64,000 nucleotides of DNA from Pavona decussata (Eukaryota): assembly GCA_977016875.1 (NCBI GenBank), contig CDRNST010000215.1, forward strand, positions 2,046,001-2,110,000, read 5' to 3'. A program made the translations under genes and the position numbers. A model generated the notes under the pieces. The model was given only the letters and a program-made list of their open reading frames with translations, had not been told where the DNA came from and did not search any database. The stretch's first letter is position 1; every line of letters starts with the position of its first letter. Of this stretch, positions 52,766 through 64,000 are shown piece after piece.

Positions 52766-54337
52766 TTATTTTGTTAATTTGGAGCTCGCTCCAGCCAGAA
52801 CACCACACAATGTAATTATCCCAGCATCCAATGTGTTGACGTTCAATGAGTGACATCCAGAGGTCACGTGGTTCGCAACAGTTGCCAGGCGCGTTTGACC
52901 ATCAACTGAATAAGTATTGATAACGATGCCGGGCATGCGATCATCCAACCAAATCCGAGCTTTTCCCCCGAAGCCGTGTGTACGAAATACTACAACTACA
53001 GATCTAGTGACATTAAAACCTAACATGTCATCTTGTGGTAAACAGATGTGCAGTTTTAAACTAGAGTTTTCTTTCTCTGCTTGCCATCCGCCAAAGCCAT
53101 CGGATCTTGAAGGCGCAACTATACCCTGTACGCGTATGCGAAAGCCCATAGTTTCGTTTTTAACTTCTTTAAATCCTATATTTTTGGTCTCCTTTACATA
53201 TAGCGAAGGATTAAAGTACTTATCATTGATATCTGGTGTGAGTAGAGTAAAGCAAAGAGGTTTTGTACCACTATTGTCCTTTTCCATGGAGTAAAAGGCA
53301 TGCCTTGGCAACTGCCGTGAAGGTTCCCTAAATAACCCAAGCTGTGAGCTATCTATGGCTCCCAGTAAGGAATTGCGGACAATGTCAATAATCATCAAGG
53401 CAATTTGTGCATGCCCGATAATGCTTGCGTGATTGCCATCGGATGAAAACATTGCTGGAGTTTTTCTATTTCCGGGATTTGGACATAATGAGCTTCGCAA
53501 ACCTACGCTTGTGATCCCATAATGCCAGGCAAGCATGGTCTGTCCGTGGTTTTCCAGATTGTCACACTGGGCTATGCCTCTGTCACCTCGAATAAAGTTT
53601 ACAAAGATGACTGCTGGAGAATTCGGTTCACTCAAGACGCTTCGCGTGAGTTGCTCGAGAGGTAATGCCATTGGCAATGAAGAGTGTTTAAAAATCATGT
53701 CGTTAAGTGAAAACTCAAGAAACACGATGTCCATAGAATCTTGGGGTTTCAATAAAGTTTTATAACAATAGGAATAAAAGTTGCTAGAAGTGCCCCCTAC
53801 CGCCAGATTGCGAAGCATAACCTTAGAGTCCGTGAATGGCTGTATAGCTTTTTGCCACCAATCAATAAACACTCGGTAATAAATGCCATTAAGATCCGAG
53901 TAATCATAGACTAATCCACCTCCCGCCGATGTTGATCCGCCCATTACCGTAACGCCAATGTCTTGACCCAGTAAAGCCTTTCTCACAATGTTTTGAAGAC
54001 GTTCTTTCGTTGTTTCTCGTTCGATAGCCGCGTTATCGAGAAGCTTGGGCGTCAGAAGAATATCCTGCAAGGACTTGAATTTGTCTTTGTAATACCACAT
54101 CTCGAAAATATTCCCTTGAACCGAGCGTTGGAGTGCATTAAGTTGGACAGGGTTATTTAACAAGCTCTCTCTTTTATATTGCTCATCAGTTGAAGAATAG
54201 AATTGTCCCTCGCACGACAAAGTAAATAACATGTCACCGAAAATAAGCAAAATGATATAGCGCCTTGGAGTTAGCTTCCTTTCCATCTGAATTGTTAGCT
54301 TTGTCGTTATTTGCTTGAGTAAAGCCGAAAACATCAT
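52766..54337 (-). CDS. SGNH/GDSL-hydrolase-like protein, paralog 2; the likely start is the ATG at 54286 (506 aa)
   Basis: VMGGSTSAG, NLAVGGTSS, EFSLND, DGNH. The Met at 54286 aligns with the start of paralog 3. Confidence 0.88.
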   Translation of the reverse strand: MMFSALLKQITTKLTIQMERKLTPRRYIILLIFGDMLFTLSCEGQFYSSTDEQYKRESLLNNPVQLNALQRSVQGNIFEMWYYKDKFKSLQDILLTPKLLDNAAIERETTKERLQNIVRKALLGQDIGVTVMGGSTSAGGGLVYDYSDLNGIYYRVFIDWWQKAIQPFTDSKVMLRNLAVGGTSSNFYSYCYKTLLKPQDSMDIVFLEFSLNDMIFKHSSLPMALPLEQLTRSVLSEPNSPAVIFVNFIRGDRGIAQCDNLENHGQTMLAWHYGITSVGLRSSLCPNPGNRKTPAMFSSDGNHASIIGHAQIALMIIDIVRNSLLGAIDSSQLGLFREPSRQLPRHAFYSMEKDNSGTKPLCFTLLTPDINDKYFNPSLYVKETKNIGFKEVKNETMGFRIRVQGIVAPSRSDGFGGWQAEKENSSLKLHICLPQDDMLGFNVTRSVVVVFRTHGFGGKARIWLDDRMPGIVINTYSVDGQTRLATVANHVTSGCHSLNVNTLDAGIITLCGVLAGASSKLTK

Positions 54338-55101
54338 GAATCAAGGCTCTTGACCTGTTGAATATGCCGTAATCTTATTTTTCCCTGAAATAGAAATACG
54401 TTTCCCGCCCTTCAGAAACAACCGGTGCCAAAAGACTCACTTAGACGTTAAAGACTGGTACCTGGCTGTTGGTAGGACTAGCTCGGGATTTTTTAACTTT
54501 CTCTGTGTAGAGTACTAAGTGGGGTTGTCATGAGAATTTTGTTCCTTTTTCTTTTTTTTTTTTTTCTTTTTTTTTTTTGCCAAACTAATCAGTTTTCCGT
54601 AGGGCGAAGGGAAAAATCCGGATTCTCACCTTTTCAAAAATCAGAACAAAATCCAGCGAACTAGTTCGACCGTAGATGCCTTTGTTAAAACTAAAATATT
54701 TTTTAAACTCGTCACTAAACGGACAGGTATCGGCTGGTGGAAATTCATTGAAAGAAAACCAAATAATAAGCTTTCTTCAACAAGTTTTTTACGAAAAGGT
54801 TCAAGCAGGCACGCGAGGGTTTATCTCGCCAGGGAAGTTATGATTTCTCAGATTCGCTCTTATGAAGGACCAATGCTCGAACTGCATGAGCTCTCGAACC
54901 TTTTTACGGTGGCAAATTATCATCAACCCTGTTGAGAAAACCAAATATTCGTTTCCCTTCCTCTAGTTATGTTATTCGCAGCACCATAATTTATTTTGAA
55001 ACATAATATTGTTGTTTTGTCTTTATCAACTTTGAAATTGTAACATCCTCATAAAACATACCACGAGTGTTGGTGTTTTTGATGTCTCACTGTTGCACAG
55101 G

Positions 55102-55172
55102 TAGCCTGCGAACGCAGACGAATTTCCTGCTGTAGAAGGGGCAGCCGGAAATACGTCTGCGTTCGCAGGCTA
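55102..55172. mobile_element. 71-bp palindromic MITE with a 9-bp target-site duplication
   Basis: TIRs TAGCCTGCGAACGCAGACG / CGTCTGCGTTCGCAGGCTA. Flanks are ttgcacagg (55093-55101) and tagcacagg (55173-55181). The empty site is at 60939-60947. Confidence 0.85.
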
Positions 55173-55330
55173 TAGCACAGGCCGAGAACTAAATGAAAAC
55201 AAAATTATAAAATCTTTAACTTGTTCAATAGAGGACTGGCTTTCCAAACTTCCGCTTGATTGTCTTGAGTAATTATTTGAGTCTGACGGCTGTCCTGTAA
55301 TCAAACGACTTAAACCTGTGCATGTCTTAC

Positions 55331-55411
55331 CGTTCTTTTTCCCCGAATGTGGCTAAAAACCTGTCTAAGGAAAGCTTCACGAAGCGCAGGATTCATACCC
55401 CAACCTTCCAG
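55331..55411 (-). pseudogene. Orphan duplicate of neuropeptide exon 4 (LEGWGMNPALREAFLRQVFSHIRGKRT)
   Basis: 81 bp with intact acceptor ttacag and donor gtaaga. One amino-acid change (I to M) versus 61088-61168. It lies downstream of the precursor's predicted stop exon. Confidence 0.65.
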
Positions 55412-56401
55412 CTGTAAGAGAGGAATTTGTTTTGAAGGAAAAATATCCAGAACAGAACAGAAAAGCAAACAAAACGAAAAACAAAACAAAGGCTTCCCTC
55501 CTCTCCCCCCCCCCCCCCCCAAAAAAAATAATATTTATAATAAAAACACACAAAATTTTAAATTCTCCCTCGTGATTTCCATAAATTATTTTTATTGCTG
55601 CTTGGAAGAAATCTTTTCTATATCAGCGCAATAGCTCTTCCGTCAGGAAGTACCATGAAATACCGATTTTTCTAAACACCTAAGGAAACTTACCGAAGCA
55701 AATCCAAGGGAAAAAACTTTTTGTTCGAAAAATCGAGAGTTTCGAAAGATCGGGGGTTCGAAGAATCTAGATTCCATTGTACTGACGACATGATTTTTGA
55801 TTGGTTTATTTGGTTAAAAGTGGTCACGTGGTATTTTCTTGTCTTCACTATTGGCTCCTTTTGCACCTCACCCCCTCCCCCCTAATCATCACTTCGTCTG
55901 TTTGTTAATAAATAAGCCCCTTGAGCGGCTTGTATTGGACGATAATGCCCAAGGCTGAAAGAGTGTCAGAACAAAAAACAACTGGCCAAGAAGCGAAGAT
56001 TCGAGTGCAATGGTAAAATTTTGAGGACAACTTAAAGCCGAGGGCAGTATCATCCGATATACCAGCCAGACGGAAAGTGTTTTTTTAAACCACTTACGAT
56101 TAAGTTCTGAAATGAGCGCGCTTGACAGCAGAAAAGACAAAACTGCCGCTAATGGCCACGGCGTTGGTTCCCGCCAAATAAATCCAACCAAGCTAGTTAA
56201 CTGCATTTTATTAAGCTGTTTCTTAATTCAACTTAACTTGTTTCTTTATTTTTTTCGTCGAAAAACATCGGGTGGTTGTTATCGTCTGATAACGGTCGGC
56301 TGATTTTGTATCACGTGATCATGACGTGTTTGGCTGGGTTATACTTGTGAATATAGGTAGGGGTGCTCTATAAAAGTGCAAAATTTGCTTTATAAGGTTC
56401 A

Positions 56402-57922
56402 CTAAGAGTTCGCCCCAGCCAGAACACCACACAACGTAAATTTCCCGGCGTTCAATGTGTTGACGTTCAATGAGTGACATCCAGAAGTCACGTGGTTCGC
56501 AACAGTTGCCAGACGCGTGTGACCAAATATTGAATAAGTATCGATAACGATACCGGGCTTGCGATCATCCAGCCAAATCCGAGCTTTCCCCCCGAAGCCG
56601 TTAGTACGAAATACTGCAACGACAGATCTAGTGACATTAAAACCTAATATGTCACCTTGTGGGAAACATATTTGCAGTTTTAAAGTCGAGTTTTCTTTCT
56701 CCGCTTGCCATCCGCCAAACCCATCGGATCTTGAAGGTGCAACCAAATCGTGTCCCTGTACGCGTTTGTGAAATACGATAGTTTCGTCTTGAACTTCTTT
56801 AAATCCTATATTTTTGGTCTCCTTTACATTCAGCGAAGGATTAAAGTACTTATCATTGATATCTGGTGTGAGTAGAGTAAAGCAAAGAGGTTTTGTACCA
56901 CTATTGTCCTTTCCCATGGAGTAAAAGGCATGCCTTGGCAACTGCCGTGAAGGTTCCCTAAATAACCCGCCAAGCTGTGAGCTATCTATGGCTCCCGGTA
57001 AGGCATTGCGGGCAGTGTCAATAATCATCAAGGCAATTTGTGCATGCCCGATAATGCTTGCGTGATTGCCATCAGATGAAAACATTGCTGGGGTCTTAAT
57101 ATTTCCGGGATTTGGACATAATGAATTTCGCAAACCAACGCTTGTGATCCCATAATGCCAGGCCAGCATGGTCTGTCCGTGGTTTTCCAGATTGTCACAC
57201 TGGGCGACGCCTAGCTCACCTCGGATAAAGTTTACAAAGATGACTGCTGGTGAATTCGGTTCACTCAAGACGCTTCGTGTGAGTTGCTCGAGAGATAATG
57301 CCATTGGCAATGAAGAGTCTCTAAAAGCCATGTCGTTAACTGAAAACTCAAGAAACACGATGTCCATAGAATCTTGTGGTTTCAATAAAGTTTTATAACA
57401 ATAGGAATAAAAGTTGCTAGAAGTGCCCCCGACCGCCAGATTGCGAAGCATAATCTTTGAGCCCGTGAATGGCTCTATAGCTTTTTGCCACCAATCAATA
57501 AACGCTCGGTAATAAATGCCATTAAGATCCGAGTAATCATTCATTAATCCACCTCCCGCCGATATTGATCCGCCCATAACCGTAACGCCAATGTCTTGAC
57601 CGAGTAAAGCCTTTGTCATAATGTTTTGAAGACGTTCTTTCGTCGTTTCTCGTTCGATAGCCGCGTTGTCGAGAAGCTCGGGCGTCAGAAGAATATCCTG
57701 CAAGGACTTGAATTTGTCTTTGTAATACCACATCTCGAAAATATTTCGTTGAACCGATCGTTGGAGTTCATTAAGTTGGACAGGGTTATTTAACAAGCTG
57801 TTTCTTTTGTATTGCTCATCAGTTAATGAAAGGACTTGTTCCTCGCACGGCAAAGTTAATACCATGTTAATAGCATTGAAAATAAGCAAAATATTGCCAC
57901 TCATATTTAACTTCCTACCCAT
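56402..57922 (-). CDS. SGNH/GDSL-hydrolase-like protein, paralog 3, 506 aa
   Basis: VMGGSISAG, NLAVGGTSS, EFSVND, DGNH. Very close tandem duplicate of 52766-54337. Confidence 0.88.
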   Translation of the reverse strand: MGRKLNMSGNILLIFNAINMVLTLPCEEQVLSLTDEQYKRNSLLNNPVQLNELQRSVQRNIFEMWYYKDKFKSLQDILLTPELLDNAAIERETTKERLQNIMTKALLGQDIGVTVMGGSISAGGGLMNDYSDLNGIYYRAFIDWWQKAIEPFTGSKIMLRNLAVGGTSSNFYSYCYKTLLKPQDSMDIVFLEFSVNDMAFRDSSLPMALSLEQLTRSVLSEPNSPAVIFVNFIRGELGVAQCDNLENHGQTMLAWHYGITSVGLRNSLCPNPGNIKTPAMFSSDGNHASIIGHAQIALMIIDTARNALPGAIDSSQLGGLFREPSRQLPRHAFYSMGKDNSGTKPLCFTLLTPDINDKYFNPSLNVKETKNIGFKEVQDETIVFHKRVQGHDLVAPSRSDGFGGWQAEKENSTLKLQICFPQGDILGFNVTRSVVAVFRTNGFGGKARIWLDDRKPGIVIDTYSIFGHTRLATVANHVTSGCHSLNVNTLNAGKFTLCGVLAGANS

Positions 57923-59417
57923 CTGAATTGTTATCTTTGTCGTATTTTCTTGAGCGAAGGCGAAAATATTATGAATCCATTGACATGTTGAATCTTATTT
58001 TTCTGTTATGATGGAAAAAAATTTCCGCATTTCAAACAACCGGTGCCAACGGGCTCACTTAAGACGTGAAATGCTGGTACCTGGGTGTTGGTGGGACGTA
58101 CTAGCTGGGAATTTGTAAATTTTCTCTGTGTAGGGTACTAAGGGGGGTTCATTTATCATGAGAATTTCGTTGCTTTTTGTCCCAAACTAATCAGTTCTCA
58201 GGGCGTAGGGAAAAAGTTCCCGGGCAGAATTAAAACCAGGATTCCCACCTTTTTAAAAGTCAGAACAAAAGCCAGCGAACAAGTTTGATCGTAGATGCCC
58301 TTAAAATGTTAATATTATTTTCTTTTAACTCGTCGCTAAAACACAGGTATCGGCTGGTGGAAAGTCATTCTTTTGTTGTCTTCAAAAGATTTATGGCTTA
58401 GGGAGAAGGTCTTTGCTCTTTTAAAAAACCCTACAAAGAAATCGCCTGTGCTCTGTTACGAACTCTTTTCAAGATGAACACTGAAAACCAGCGAAATCTG
58501 TTTAGTTTAGTTTATTTAACCATTATACATACTTACATTATTTATCACCTGAAGGAAGGAGGTGGGGGAGGCGGACGATTTAGGGGCCGTGGAATCACGG
58601 ATCACATGGTTTTCAGAAGAATAGGACGGGGGATCAGCGATAATTGAGAGGCATTAGCCCAGCCGAGTGGTTTTATACCCGATAAAACACGTGCTGCGAG
58701 TTTTTTGAACGGCTTCAAAAACATTCCTGGAAAAGCGTGTGTCAATAGAGTTCATACCAATTACGCTTTTCTGAACGTTGGAAATTAGTATACGTGAAAA
58801 ACATCGCATACTAATGAGGAGTGTTTTATCAGCTGCTAAAACACCGCATACTAATATGAAGGAGGTTTATCGATATAAAGTCAAAAGCACGTGATGTATT
58901 TTCGACCATTTGATAGGTCAATGGGCTTATGAATTATTAATGAGTTTTGAATGTGTATATCAACAATACCAATTGAATTGGTATTTATTACTGTATTCTC
59001 CTCCTTTTGATATAGACATAAATTTTTGTTTTATGCTTTGGCCTCAACCTGGCCCAATATGATCACCAACAACGATCGCAGATGATCGCATTGTTAAACA
59101 TATTATGGGGCTGGTGTTATTTTATCAGCCATATCAAGGACATATAATTATTCACCAAGAAAATAATCTACAACTCAATATCATTGCTCCATGTTAAGGT
59201 TTTATTATCATTTTTCACGTTGCAAATCTAGCGTCCATATTTGATGCAGTGGATGACACTTTTTTTCACAATTTATATTGAAACGAGTCGATTGGAAAAA
59301 GCATTACTTATTTACTCAAATATTTTCCTAGGAATTTCCATATATGTAAATGTTGGCTTTAGCTTGGTTGTCTTGTCGTTTGCCGGGTTGTGTTTGCTAG
59401 CTGTCTTCAGAGGTTTT

Positions 59418-62400
59418 TCATGTGGACCTTTTGGAGTCATCCTGAAAGTAAAGCAGAAAAGTGCTTGTGTAATCCTTTAACCCCTAATATCAAAGAACAA
59501 ATTCTCCTATCTTGTCCCCACACTTTTCTTATAAAATTACTGGGGACAAGAAAAGTCACCTTGGGTAATCATATCCTTAATTCTCATGACCTCTGGGGTT
59601 AGATAACCCTTGATATTACAAGGAGAAATTTGATGATGATCACTGTTAGGGTTAACATTACCACCACAGATTGTTTTAATTGACTAAAATAAAAATATTG
59701 TGGAGGAGCGTATGCAGGTTTCTGATAAACACTCGTTTCCACGTCGTAAACTGACTTTTGTCTTTCACTAATTACATGGAGTAAAACATATTTCAACCTT
59801 AGGGGCAAAAGGAGGGGAAAAAATCAGAATAGCCTACGCCTAAAACCCAGCCGAGTTGTCCGCTTCATTTATGCAACGAGGAACAGCTCCCGTCGATTTA
59901 CAGTTCAACCCACTGCAATAAATGAAATTAAACTAAGCGTTTTCAATTCAGGGTTTTACCCTTACTATTGTAGTTTGGTGCTAAACCCTAAAATACTGTT
60001 CCTTGCCTAAAAGGAGCTCTATTTACTCAGTTTTCCGCCTGATAAATGGGGTTCTGTTCTCGTGCATGTCAATACTATGAGGTAAAGGGATACTAGGTTG
60101 TGTAATCCTCATAAAGTGTCGGTTTGAGATGTGAAATCGAGTGTTCATTGGCTTTCCACCAGCATGGCGGTGATGACATCACGTCTTCTAAAATAGTTTA
60201 AAAAATCGAAGGGCAATGAAACCCGTGAGGGAGCGGAGAGGGGAATTATATATGAGGGGAGGAGAGGGTTTTGCGGTGCAAATTTCGTTTGAATTTCCCC
60301 GGTTTTGAGGTGGAGAGGAAAAAGTGTAACATCGATCTACTCCCTAAAGGAAGAAGCTCTTAGTCTAGGAACTGTCAACGTTTCTCATTTTGTTTCTCGG
60401 CAGCTTGAACACTAAAATGTCCCTCCCTCCCCCCACCCCTCACCCTGCATACCTGTTGTCTTTTCCCACGGATGTGCCCCAGATATGCATTGTTTAAAGC
60501 AGCCAATAAATCTTCATTTGACGTCCAGCCACCCTTGAACACAACACGATTAAACAACATCACTTTTTAGAACTTGGTTCACTTAATAAACAGACACGCG
60601 AGGGTGTATCTCATCAGGGAATTCAAGTAACGAATTCTTAGATTCGCTCTGACGAAAGGGCCAATGCTTGAAACATCAACTCTCGAACCTTTTTACGGTG
60701 GTCAATGACCTTATCAACTTTTTTGATAAAACCAAATATTCGTTTCCCCTCCCCCACTGACGCAGTACCACAGATTCTTTTGAAACAAACCCACTTATAC
60801 TTTGAGGAGTGGCGAAGACGTAAGCTTTTGTATTTGTTTTGTTTGTTGATAATATTGTTGTTTTGTCTTTTAAAACTTCTAAACTGTAACATCCTGATGA
60901 AACATATCTCGAGCGTTGGTCTTTTTGATGTCTCACTATAGCACAGGCCGTGAACTAAATGAAAACAAAATTATAAAATCTTTAACTTGTTTTTCCAATG
61001 AAACTTCTGCTTGATTGTCTTGAGCAATTACTTGAAAGTCTAACGGCTGTCCTGTAATCAAACGACTTAAACCTGTGCATGTCTTACCGTTCTTTTTCCC
61101 CGAATGTGGCTAAAAACCTGTCTAAGGAAAGCTTCACGAAGCGCAGGATTGATACCCCAACCTTCCAGCTGTAAGAGAGGAATTTGTTTTAAGGGAAAAA
61201 AACAAATAAACAAACAAAACGGAACAGAAAAGCAAACAAAAACAAAAAACAAGGAAAGGGAAACAATTTTTGGTCCGAAGAATCGAGAGTTTCGAAAAAT
61301 TCCATGTCTCTTGCCTATTCTTGCAAAGACATCTTTCATATATAATCTTATCTGCAGCGACGAGTAGAAGACGTCCGTGTTTCCAAAACATCGACTGCTT
61401 AAACTTTCACTTTTGGCGCCAAAAACGCCGTACTCGATCCACGCCCGCACAACGTCCCTACCGTTCGTCTGCTTATTAAGCTCTCTAATATCTTTCAAAG
61501 GTAACCATAAAACTTTTCAGACTCATAGTAAAGCTATATACCAGAAGACATAACGTTGATTATTGTTCTCAAAGTCTTAGTCACCCTTAATTACACAAAT
61601 ATCTCGAGTAAGGCTTTCATATCCTGTTCAGATTGTTTTATCCGACTAATTGTTTCGCACGTTCCAGAACAGTGAACACGAAAGCTAGCGCAGTCGAAAG
61701 AGAGCCTTTACATAATCTCTTATAAAGTTTGTCCAAGAAGTTAAAACGCTTCTTACCGTTCGCTTTCCACGGAAATGACCCAGATAAGCTGTGTTCAGTG
61801 CTTCTCCTAGCGGTGGATTGTCTTCTAAATCCTGGAAATGAAAAGCCAAGTACCAATTCAACTTCATCAAAGAAAAAGATACTTAGGAATTGAATCCGTG
61901 GTACACGTAACCAGAGTCTTTGTAACGTTGGATGCGCGGTGGTATGGTGGTTAGCGTATCAGTCTTCCGGTTGGAACGGATCAGAAGATCGGTGGTTCGA
62001 GGTTAGGTTGCAATTGGTCTCTTGAAGTTCATTACTGTGTTGTTTCCTTAGACAAGAAACTGTACTCCACCTTGTCTCTCTTCACCCAGGTGTATAAATG
62101 TGTCTCGGCAAGATAAACGCATAGTGCTGGGGATGGATTAGCATCCTGTATCTAGGGAGGAGTAGCAATACTGCTAGCTGCTTCATGCTACAGAAATCCG
62201 GTTAAGTCCCAGTCGTGTGGGCTACTTAGGATCTAAGTGTGACCTAACCATTACCTAATATGGGTCCAAGTACGAGTGCTCCTGGTAAGAACCGCCTTGG
62301 TTTCATTGACTGAATATTTGACTACAATTTATACGATCACCGCACATGCCTACCAAAGGAACATTAAGCGGCAATATGACTGCGCATGCTCGTCGCGCGT

Positions 62401-63771
62401 GAGCAATCTTACTTGGCGAAATGGCGGCATTTTTAAAATTCCCATTGCTTGTTCTCATTTCGCGTGGATAAGCCCAAATCAAAATAGATAAGGTTGTCGC
62501 TTTCAGGAAAGGTTCCTTCGAACTTCCTCCATCACATATCTTATTCAACAAAAAAAATATTGAGGTAACAGGTATGAATTTGGCGATTGAAGTGGAGCGT
62601 TCTTAATCGATTCACACTTGAATCTTCGGAGCATGCGCACTCATTTTGCCGCTGTGTCCATTAAAGCATTTTAAGACGTAATTTACCGTTCTTCGTCCAC
62701 GGATGTGTCCAAAATAAGCATTTTTTAGTGCCTCTTCCAACGGGGGACCATTATCAGACTTCTGTAAAGAAAAATAAAGAAAAATAATGAAAAATCAGAA
62801 CCTTAAAAGGAGAGTCATGGGGATTAATATTTGGTATAATTACGTTTATCTCTCAACAGAATCCTATCATTAATGACCCAGTTTTGTTATAAATTACCAC
62901 CTCAGTGCACTAAACTGTCGATGAGTGTCTCTGGACACAGATGGGCTGGATCGAAATGGATTACATTTTGAAATAAGTTAGCATTTTTGTTTCCAAAATG
63001 TACCAGAACGGGTCCCGAGTTGTTTCTTTCAAGAATTCAGTTGAATTCTTTCTCTCGGTGTTCTAGAATTATTTTGCTACCGTATTAGTGAAGTTGTTGT
63101 TTACCATTTTCTTTAAAATAGGTAAAGATTTGATTCTAAAGCTCTCTCTCTGGAACTAGACGTTAGTACACCGACCGGAAAGTGGAACAAGAGGTTCGTG
63201 GGCCACAACTCCGCAATGATCATTACAAACTCGTTCCCAGGGTCTCTCGTCAGCCAGTCTCCGAGAACGAGAAAGGAGAGACCCTGGGAGTGAGTTTGTA
63301 ATCATTACTGTGCCCTTCAATAACACAAAAACCTTGAACTTCAAAACCCAGCTGACGATTGTATTGTCCATCAAAGTCAACCAATCACAGAGCAAGAACG
63401 TTACCACACTTCCGTTGTGTCGACTAAAGGCAGAGAAAGGACGTTGCCGTCGGTGGTCTCAATAAACATCAGTATTTATCTGTTATTGAAGGGGTAATAA
63501 CTATACGCTTTTCCGTAACCGTTTATTAAAGCGCCCAACGTCCGATGTTGCCTTAAGCTAAATCATAATTGGAAAGAGCCGACTTTGCGTCATATAAATC
63601 ACAACTGTGTTTATATTTATTGAATTCACTCACCGTTCGTCTTCCTCTTATGTGACCAAAATATTTGGCGTTTAGTGCCTCGAGTAAAGGAGGACCTTGA
63701 GATTTTTTCTCTGTTTCACAGCTCGCCAGGTAAACCGTGAAGAAGAAGACGACAACAAGTCTTAGAAACAT
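59418..63771 (-). CDS. HIRamide-family neuropeptide precursor (prepro-peptide, about 157 aa, five amidated peptides, six coding exons)
   Basis: Exons: 63634-63771 (signal peptide + ...GPPLLEALNAKYFGHIR-GRRT), 62687-62761 (KSDNGPPLEEALKNAYFGHIR-GRRT), 61757-61831 (DLEDNPPLGEALNTAYLGHFR-GKRT), 61088-61168 (LEGWGINPALREAFLRQVFSHIR-GKRT), 60453-60533 (GGWTSNEDLLAALNNAYLGHIR-GKRQQ), 59418-59441 (DDSKRST-stop, least certain). All introns are GT-AG and phase 0. An acceptor at 63779-63780 implies an upstream 5'UTR exon. AATAAA lies near 59201-59206 on the minus strand. Confidence 0.88.
59477..59655. mobile_element. piggyBac-like MITE copy in the last intron of the neuropeptide gene
   Basis: ttaacccctaatatcaaagaac...cactgttagggttaa. 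Confidence 0.65.
60595..60790 (+). mobile_element. Penelope-like terminal-repeat remnant with a minimal hammerhead-ribozyme-like core
   Basis: CTGACGA (60649-60655), short stem GGGC-CAAT-GCTT, then GAAA (60670-60673). A more decayed copy lies at ~54850-54960. Confidence 0.5.
61935..62255 (+). mobile_element. tRNA-derived SINE, antisense, in an intron of the neuropeptide gene
   Basis: A-box-like GGTGGTATGGTGGTTAGCG and B-box GGTTCGAG, then a conserved-type core ccttagacaagaaact...cacccaggtgtataaatg and a tail ggattagcatcc...gcttcatgctacagaaa. Confidence 0.75.
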
Positions 63772-64000
63772 TATTGGCCTGAAACGAGAAATTTCATCTT
63801 AAATAAAATAGTCAACGATAAAGTCGGATAACGAGGAGGACAGTCGCTAAAATGAGAATAAAGACTGAATAGCTGCTAAACTATGAGATAAAATCTCGAT
63901 CTCTAAACAAAATAAATGTGGTATTAAAGATAATCAATTTTCCAGTAATGAAGCATCATTTACGTTGAACGCTGTCTGTCAGATCAACGTGTCCTCACGC

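Follow-up and report, generated by a model that had tools for sequence, protein, structure and literature searches.

The 64,000-nucleotide (nt) stretch of the Pavona decussata genome analyzed here (the window: assembly GCA_977016875.1, contig CDRNST010000215.1, positions 2,046,001 to 2,110,000 of the forward strand) contains a HIRamide-type gene on the minus strand, running from position 63771 to position 59418. This gene is very probably the single-copy stony-coral orthologue of the hexacorallian FHIRamide/FGHIRamide preprohormone gene, that is, a spliced gene with one peptide per exon, amidated peptides as its products and a cassette exon, E4. Its six coding exons (E1 to E6 in the order of transcription) have canonical AG/GT borders, as read from the flanks, and encode a signal peptide, five peptide copies ending in H-I/F-R-G-K/R-R and a 7-residue tail. 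When the whole window was scanned in six frames for the motif H-[IFLVM]-R-G-[KR]-[KR], only six matches emerged, all on the minus strand: five of these, within 60459-63654, belong to the five peptide-encoding exons, and the remaining one, at 55334-55351, lies in an additional copy of E4.

The coding lengths of the exons, 46+25+25+27+27+7, add up to 157 amino acids (aa). Each of the exons E1 to E5 is preceded by a polypyrimidine tract and an AG acceptor, and the coding length of each is a multiple of three. The first exon starts with the initiator methionine and the signal peptide, followed by the first peptide copy that ends in HIR-G-R-R-T; its candidate acceptor, tttcag/G at 63779/63778, leaves 7 nt of the 5' untranslated region (UTR) before the ATG. 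The original prediction, made from the letters of the sequence, had proposed five motif-bearing pieces with adjacent donors, all of which were recovered at the expected positions on the minus strand, and internal exons of 75 or 81 bp in phase 0-0, the exact lengths being 75, 75, 81 and 81 bp; the boundary that it gave for the gene, 59418, coincides with the final base of the stop codon. The proposed signal peptide also holds up when judged by heuristic sequence features: the n-region contains an Arg, the hydrophobic core comprises 11-12 residues (residues 5-15, mean Kyte-Doolittle value of 2.0-2.8), and the small residues A-S-C occupy positions -3 to -1, before E19. At the N-terminus of the predicted peptides, the X-Pro-Pro signature takes the form of G-P-P in E1 and E2 and N-P-P in E3 and is missing in E4 and E5, a pattern that other corals share. 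The E4 peptide, in particular, has no Pro-Pro, contains the motif GWG.NPALREA and ends in SHIR-Gly, which would give NPALREAF...SHIR-amide.

A search of the coral's own 602-Mb genome identifies this as the single HIRamide locus: no paralogous HIRamide gene was detected elsewhere in the genome, the sole other match having an E-value of 3.1. There is no Pfam family for the precursor, and the only match in that database, to zf-C2HC, is below the threshold and represents noise.

When E1 alone was queried against 1.8 billion representative sequences, it retrieved proteins of Desmophyllum pertusum, Stylophora pistillata and Porites lobata (E = 3e-30 to 2.5e-25, 64-71% identity), and these orthologues carry the same signal-peptide start. 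The remaining E1 matches are open reading frame (ORF) calls from unannotated coral assemblies that consist of exon 1 and the intron read through, continuing with '...GKRTVS' or a similar sequence, which is the translated GT donor. The models compared here (XP_073246000.1/XP_073246001.1 of Porites lutea, CAH3037271.1 of Porites lobata, XP_022784111.1/PFX29554.1 of Stylophora and KAJ7386272.1 of Desmophyllum pertusum) all bear the names 'uncharacterized' or 'hypothetical', and for the lineage of P. decussata, the public collections hold only exon-plus-intron read-through ORFs. ORF-based or ab initio callers fragment the gene. A metagenome-wide search with a DNA pattern of two adjacent HIRGKR motifs returned 14 contigs, several from gut metagenomes, including one labeled human gut; the three that were inspected match by chance, since their motifs do not share a frame and peptide repeats are lacking.

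The assignment to the HIRamide family, which was part of the original prediction, is upheld by the five H-I/F-R-G-K/R-R copies and by orthology to published coral precursors. The coral FHIRamide/FGHIRamide preprohormones were described in 2020, in a family represented in Actiniaria, Scleractinia, Corallimorpharia and Zoantharia (PMC7523074), and the coral precursors in Additional file 6 of that article begin with MFLR or MLLR and contain copies almost identical to those in the window. The P. decussata gene shares with the coral preprohormones (Koch and Grimmelikhuijzen 2020, family #6) the MFLRL... start, the GHIR-G-K-R-T exon ends and the order of the copies, namely, the PP-type, the GWG.NPALREA type, the GGW.SN..LL type and a short tail; this order matches, specifically, the Corynactis, Porites and Stylophora precursors of Additional file 6. 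The C-terminal core G-H-I-R-G-K-R is invariant across the coral copies. There are also differences: the E4-type peptide ends in SHIR in P. decussata and in HLR, RFR or HFR in other species, and unlike the other coral systems, this lineage has an extra E4 copy 5.7 kb downstream.

The arrangement of the exons is shared as well. The Porites lutea locus of XP_073246000.1 (L024) has six coding exons, with one peptide each and the same boundaries after GKRT and GKRQQ; the Stylophora pistillata locus of XP_022784111.1 (L025), also with six coding exons, has the same peptide-exon structure; and the unannotated coral loci L019, L020 and L021/L022 are organized in the same way. In a clustering of exon peptides from four species, the groups follow position (E1, E2/3, E4, E5) rather than species, and therefore, the exon set appears to predate the split of these corals; according to the published supplement, the E4 and E5 types would predate even the split from Corallimorpharia. 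Judging from these comparisons, the exon-per-peptide layout is old in corals, and it is present in deposited annotation. Because the P. lutea and S. pistillata GenBank/RefSeq models have the same layout, and coral FGHIRamide preprohormones have been published (PMC7523074), the claim that the gene is hidden or novel fails for corals; for anemones, the layout appears to be different (see below), which saves part of the evolutionary argument. Within the searchable literature, the three key papers do not mention exons, introns or splicing for the HIRamide gene, and a full-text search found no further paper on it.

The gene is expressed and spliced. When assembled RNA contigs were placed on positions 58001-64000, two runs from the same organism but different studies, X1 and X2, both contained the joints 62761/63634 (E1-E2), 61831/62687 (E2-E3) and 60533/61757 (E3 straight to E5, with E4 skipped), and X1 alone contained the joint 59441/60453 (E5-E6), with an E6 contig piece at 59179-59440. 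All four joints read CT..AC on the plus strand, that is, GT..AG on the minus strand, and match the exon borders to the base. A single 433-nt contig spans E6, E5, E3, E2 and E1 and then departs from the genome at 63779 for 40 letters; altogether, the X1 and X2 contigs match 63634-63779 and continue with 15 and 40 nt that are absent from the genome there. Because the contigs depart from the genome exactly at the candidate acceptor of E1, there must be a non-coding leader exon upstream, possibly beyond the end of the window. Over the 229 bp that precede the ATG, the divergence from L019 is just 2.2%. At the other end of the gene, the signal AATAAA is located at 59206-59201, and the E6 contig ends at 59179, 22 nt past this signal; the transcript is probably polyadenylated near 59179. 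Given that the RNA contigs skip E4, the RNA-supported product consists of 130 aa and includes four peptides, so that the 157-aa precursor of the original prediction holds as the sum of the exons but is not the form seen in the transcript.

Although skipped in these contigs, E4 is identical at 81 of the 81 nt in two related coral genomes (L019 and L020), whereas the flanking introns diverge from those in the window by 4.5-7% and 9-10%, respectively (Fisher p = 0.019 for L019 and 0.0008 for L020). Each of the six copies examined has an unbroken reading frame and an intact splice site on either side. The E4-type exon forms part of the proteins of Porites lobata, P. lutea and P. evermanni and of Stylophora XP_022784111.1, and is also found at the L021 locus and in the published Corynactis and Ricordea transcripts. 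Because E4 is conserved far above the intron level and is included in other corals, it is probably a conserved, regulated cassette exon, the inclusion of which is not captured in the present contigs. The skipping of individual exons in frame, which had been predicted, does occur: in addition to the loss of E4 from the RNA contigs, the 27-aa E4-type exon is precisely what sets the two Stylophora models apart, and the P. lutea protein isoform X2 lacks exactly the 27-aa E5-type exon.

The likely fate of the precursor can be outlined from general processing biochemistry and from the data on Nematostella, in which HIRamides have been detected as amidated peptides by mass spectrometry, with a neuronal in situ signal (Hayakawa et al. 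2019, PMC6756747), and have been shown to activate two G-protein-coupled receptors (GPCRs) with half-maximal effective concentrations of 2.1 nM and 190 nM (Thiel et al. 2024, PMC11087051). The minus-strand transcript comprises the non-coding leader, E1 with the signal peptide and peptide 1, the phase-0 exons with one peptide each and the tail exon with seven codons. Upon removal of the signal peptide after about residue 17-18, a prohormone convertase would cut after K/R-R, a carboxypeptidase would strip the basic residues, and peptidylglycine amidating mono-oxygenase would turn the Gly into the C-terminal Arg-amide, with N-terminal trimming of the cnidarian type expected to halt at X-Pro-Pro. 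The predicted products are about 17 residues long, end in (F/L)GH(I/F)R-amide and, by analogy, would be ligands of GPCRs akin to the two HIRamide receptors of Nematostella; cleavage, amidation, N-terminal trimming and GPCR signaling are all envisaged on this basis. The internal exons are multiples of three and self-contained, and therefore, the loss or gain of an exon alters only which peptides are made; omission of E4, as in the RNA seen, yields the four-peptide, 130-aa form, E4 probably being a regulated option.

Several considerations weigh against the interpretation of the locus as a neuropeptide gene with a regulated E4. The runs X1 and X2 are labeled RNA by guess only, though clearly spliced, and no junction touching E4 is found among the joints listed for them; of the five junctions expected originally, E1-E2, E2-E3 and E5-E6 are represented by spliced RNA, together with E3-E5, whereas E3-E4 and E4-E5 are not among these joints. 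The RNA-seq metatranscriptome runs X4 and X6 have no depth on E1 or E5 and, with only repeat-like or unspliced pieces, add no support. The nucleotide invariance of E4 could stem from a constraint unrelated to its coding role; N-terminal processing is assigned by analogy only, the N-termini of the E4 and E5 peptides not being predictable; and the authors of the 2020 survey doubted that the long, acidic FHIRamide peptides are genuine neuropeptides (PMC7523074).

Two alternatives concern the use of E4 and the nature of the products. One is that E4, along with its duplicate, is a dead or never-used pseudo-exon, so that the gene makes only four peptides and the five-peptide model stems from a misreading. 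The direct joining of E3 to E5 in both spliced contigs conforms with this possibility, as does the lack of an E4-type copy in Desmophyllum, Pocillopora damicornis and one of the Stylophora models. However, a dead exon is hardly compatible with the identity of E4 in two relatives against introns that diverge by 5-10%, with the unbroken frames and splice sites in six of the six copies and with the presence of the exon in Porites and Stylophora proteins and in corallimorph transcripts, all of which makes this alternative quite improbable; in this species, the E4-skipped form is the only one seen, among the joints listed and in contigs, and assembled contigs lose rare isoforms. The other alternative accepts secretion and processing of the precursor but holds that something other than neuropeptides results, such as antimicrobial or other secreted peptides, with the likeness to HIRamides reflecting shared descent only. 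The length of the peptides (about 17 aa), their acidic residues and the published doubt are in its favor, but the orthologues in Nematostella are amidated in vivo, neuronal and active on two GPCRs (at 2 nM and 190 nM), and the C-terminal core does not vary across the coral copies, so that this view appears still less credible, indeed very improbable. Thus, the reading of the locus as an HIRamide neuropeptide gene with E4 as a cassette exon is preferred here.

The history of the peptide exons is far from static. The extra copy of E4, E4dup, is located within a segmental duplication of approximately 0.7-0.95 kb (54803-55750) that was copied from 60588-61300 and sits between two GDSL/SGNH-like ORFs. 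Only 1 of its 81 nt departs from E4, compared with 44 of 257 (17%) in the flanks (p = 5e-5), with about 25 nt upstream and 45 nt downstream also nearly identical to the surroundings of E4, and it is present and open in both L019 and L020. In the coral represented by L021 (11888-12116) and L022 (ENA ERZ25071797), there is a tandem duplication of the E2-type exon, the copies having similar flanks and being separated by an intron of only 79 nt, which brings the number of peptide exons to six, and Porites evermanni has two identical E3-type copies. A change in the opposite direction is apparent at L020 (ENA ERZ26692669), where E3 carries 7 substitutions in 75 nt, 6 of these non-synonymous, including the replacement of Pro-Pro by Ser-Ser and of HFR by NFH, and seems to be either decaying or being repurposed; E4, E5 and E6 at the same locus are unchanged or show only synonymous changes. 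E5 has only synonymous changes in both L019 and L020, and the E6 tail is identical in the two. Judging by these differences among related genomes, lineage-specific duplication, decay and copying of exons appear to be still ongoing, and the proposal that the gene grew by whole-exon duplication fits the recent exon duplicates in the relatives.

In sea anemones, the copies might have multiplied in a different manner. The precursor of Nematostella (PMC6756747) and the other actiniarian precursors share with those of corals a signal peptide followed by several copies, each 14-19 aa long, with X-Pro-Pro N-termini and HIR-Gly-Lys/Arg-Arg, but their copies end in F/Y-HIR without the Gly before His, number 5 to 10 and are separated by variable spacers. 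A profile constructed from six coral precursors reached scleractinian proteins and genomic ORF fragments only, with no match in Actiniaria, and therefore, the exon structure of the anemone genes was judged from the published supplement (PMC7523074, Additional file 6). In that supplement, the entry for Phymanthus crucifer was translated in a single frame from one genome contig and shows a signal peptide and nine copies followed by 'GKRVS...', a continuation that is expected for read-through of a GT donor, and the Anemonia viridis precursor includes eight copies on a 4.3-kb scaffold, whereas the genome-derived coral and corallimorph entries stop after the first copy with 'GKRTV...'. As far as the authors' sequence labels go, this suggests that the anemone copies are intra-exon repeats and that only the terminal intron is shared with corals. 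The chances are about even that there were two routes of expansion, with one copy per symmetric exon in Scleractinia and Corallimorpharia and tandem repeats within an exon in Actiniaria, and that the E4-type peptide is a ligand under separate regulation and with a receptor preference of its own. If, on the contrary, the exon-per-peptide layout were ancestral to all Hexacorallia, anemones included, there would be no contrast between corals and anemones. The failure of the coral profile to reach Actiniaria leaves room for such a scenario, but the single-frame nine-copy contig of Phymanthus and the eight copies on the 4.3-kb Anemonia scaffold, compared with the coral entries that end at the first copy, make it unlikely.

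Coordinates of the exons of the HIRamide-type gene and of the extra E4 copy (positions in the window; CDS, coding sequence)
Feature	Position	Strand	Description
E1 exon	63634-63778	minus	CDS 63771-63634, 138 bp, 46 aa; donor GTGAGT
E2 exon	62687-62761	minus	75 bp, phase 0-0; second copy G-P-P...HIR-G-R-R-T; donor GTAAAT
E3 exon	61757-61831	minus	75 bp, phase 0-0; third copy N-P-P...HFR-G-K-R-T; donor GTAAGA
E4 exon	61088-61168	minus	81 bp, phase 0-0; divergent copy LEGWGINPALREAF...SHIR-G-K-R-T; donor GTAAGA
E5 exon	60453-60533	minus	81 bp, phase 0-0; last copy GGW.SN..LL...HIR-G-K-R-Q-Q; donor GTATGC
E6 terminal exon	59179-59441	minus	CDS 59441-59421 (DDSKRST), stop TGA 59420-59418, then 3'UTR
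E4dup (extra E4 copy)	55331-55411	minus	intact frame and splice sites; outside the transcript seen

The introns and the surroundings of the gene contain several repeats. Intron 4 includes, at 60633-60803, a dispersed high-copy repeat of about 165 bp, with more than 1300 first-look candidates in the P. decussata genome and dozens of scored copies at 76-84% identity; this is the sole high-copy part of the duplicated segment. E4 itself was considered as a part of a dispersed repeat, a possibility that was rejected given that the exon occurs just twice in the genome. In each of the four runs, the summed contig depth is very high over the segments 59470-59655 (intron 5), 58600-59000 and 62400-62800, and loose ends are numerous there, so that these segments are probably high-copy repeats; the first of these has copies within the window at 23262-23429 and 42018-42216. 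In intron 1 (63214-63310), there is a 35-nt inverted repeat, 86% complementary and with a 27-nt loop, which could be an end pair of a miniature inverted-repeat transposable element or a hairpin RNA. An ARAGORN search of the introns found no transfer RNA-derived element. Downstream of the gene, the window contains long intronless ORFs of 506-550 aa at 56402-57922 (minus strand), 52766-54337 (minus strand) and 48484-50136 (plus strand); two of the three were scanned, and their matches to Pfam Lipase_GDSL_2, at 23 and 18.7 bits, fall short of the curated cut-off of 32.9. The Stylophora HIRamide locus has a GDSL-like neighbor as well, in the form of a faint match, so that this neighborhood may be conserved.

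The logic of the gene recalls that of TAC1-like cassette peptide genes, in which related peptides are encoded on separate exons that arose by duplication and splicing sets the mix of peptides; exon duplication is mentioned in the literature for proglucagon also. The likeness concerns the logic, and in the coral gene, unlike the TAC1-like genes, all internal exons are near-uniform symmetric units of 75-81 bp. A link to tachykinins has been proposed (PMC6756747) and disputed (PMC7523074).

These findings do not open a new class of system. What is modestly new is the conserved yet skipped cassette exon, the stray copy of E4 and the apparent difference between corals and anemones in the way the copies were multiplied. 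For the genome of P. decussata, the analysis provides an exact drawing of the gene, with an expressed four-peptide isoform and a conserved, optional exon for a further peptide. The contrast between corals and anemones allows two modes by which peptide copies expand to be tested within one family, and the exon-per-copy layout, if true, permits birth, death, copying and cassette splicing at the level of exons. The gene illustrates, in a compact form found in nature, how the neuropeptide mixture of an animal that has a nerve net can be determined by exon duplication and cassette splicing.

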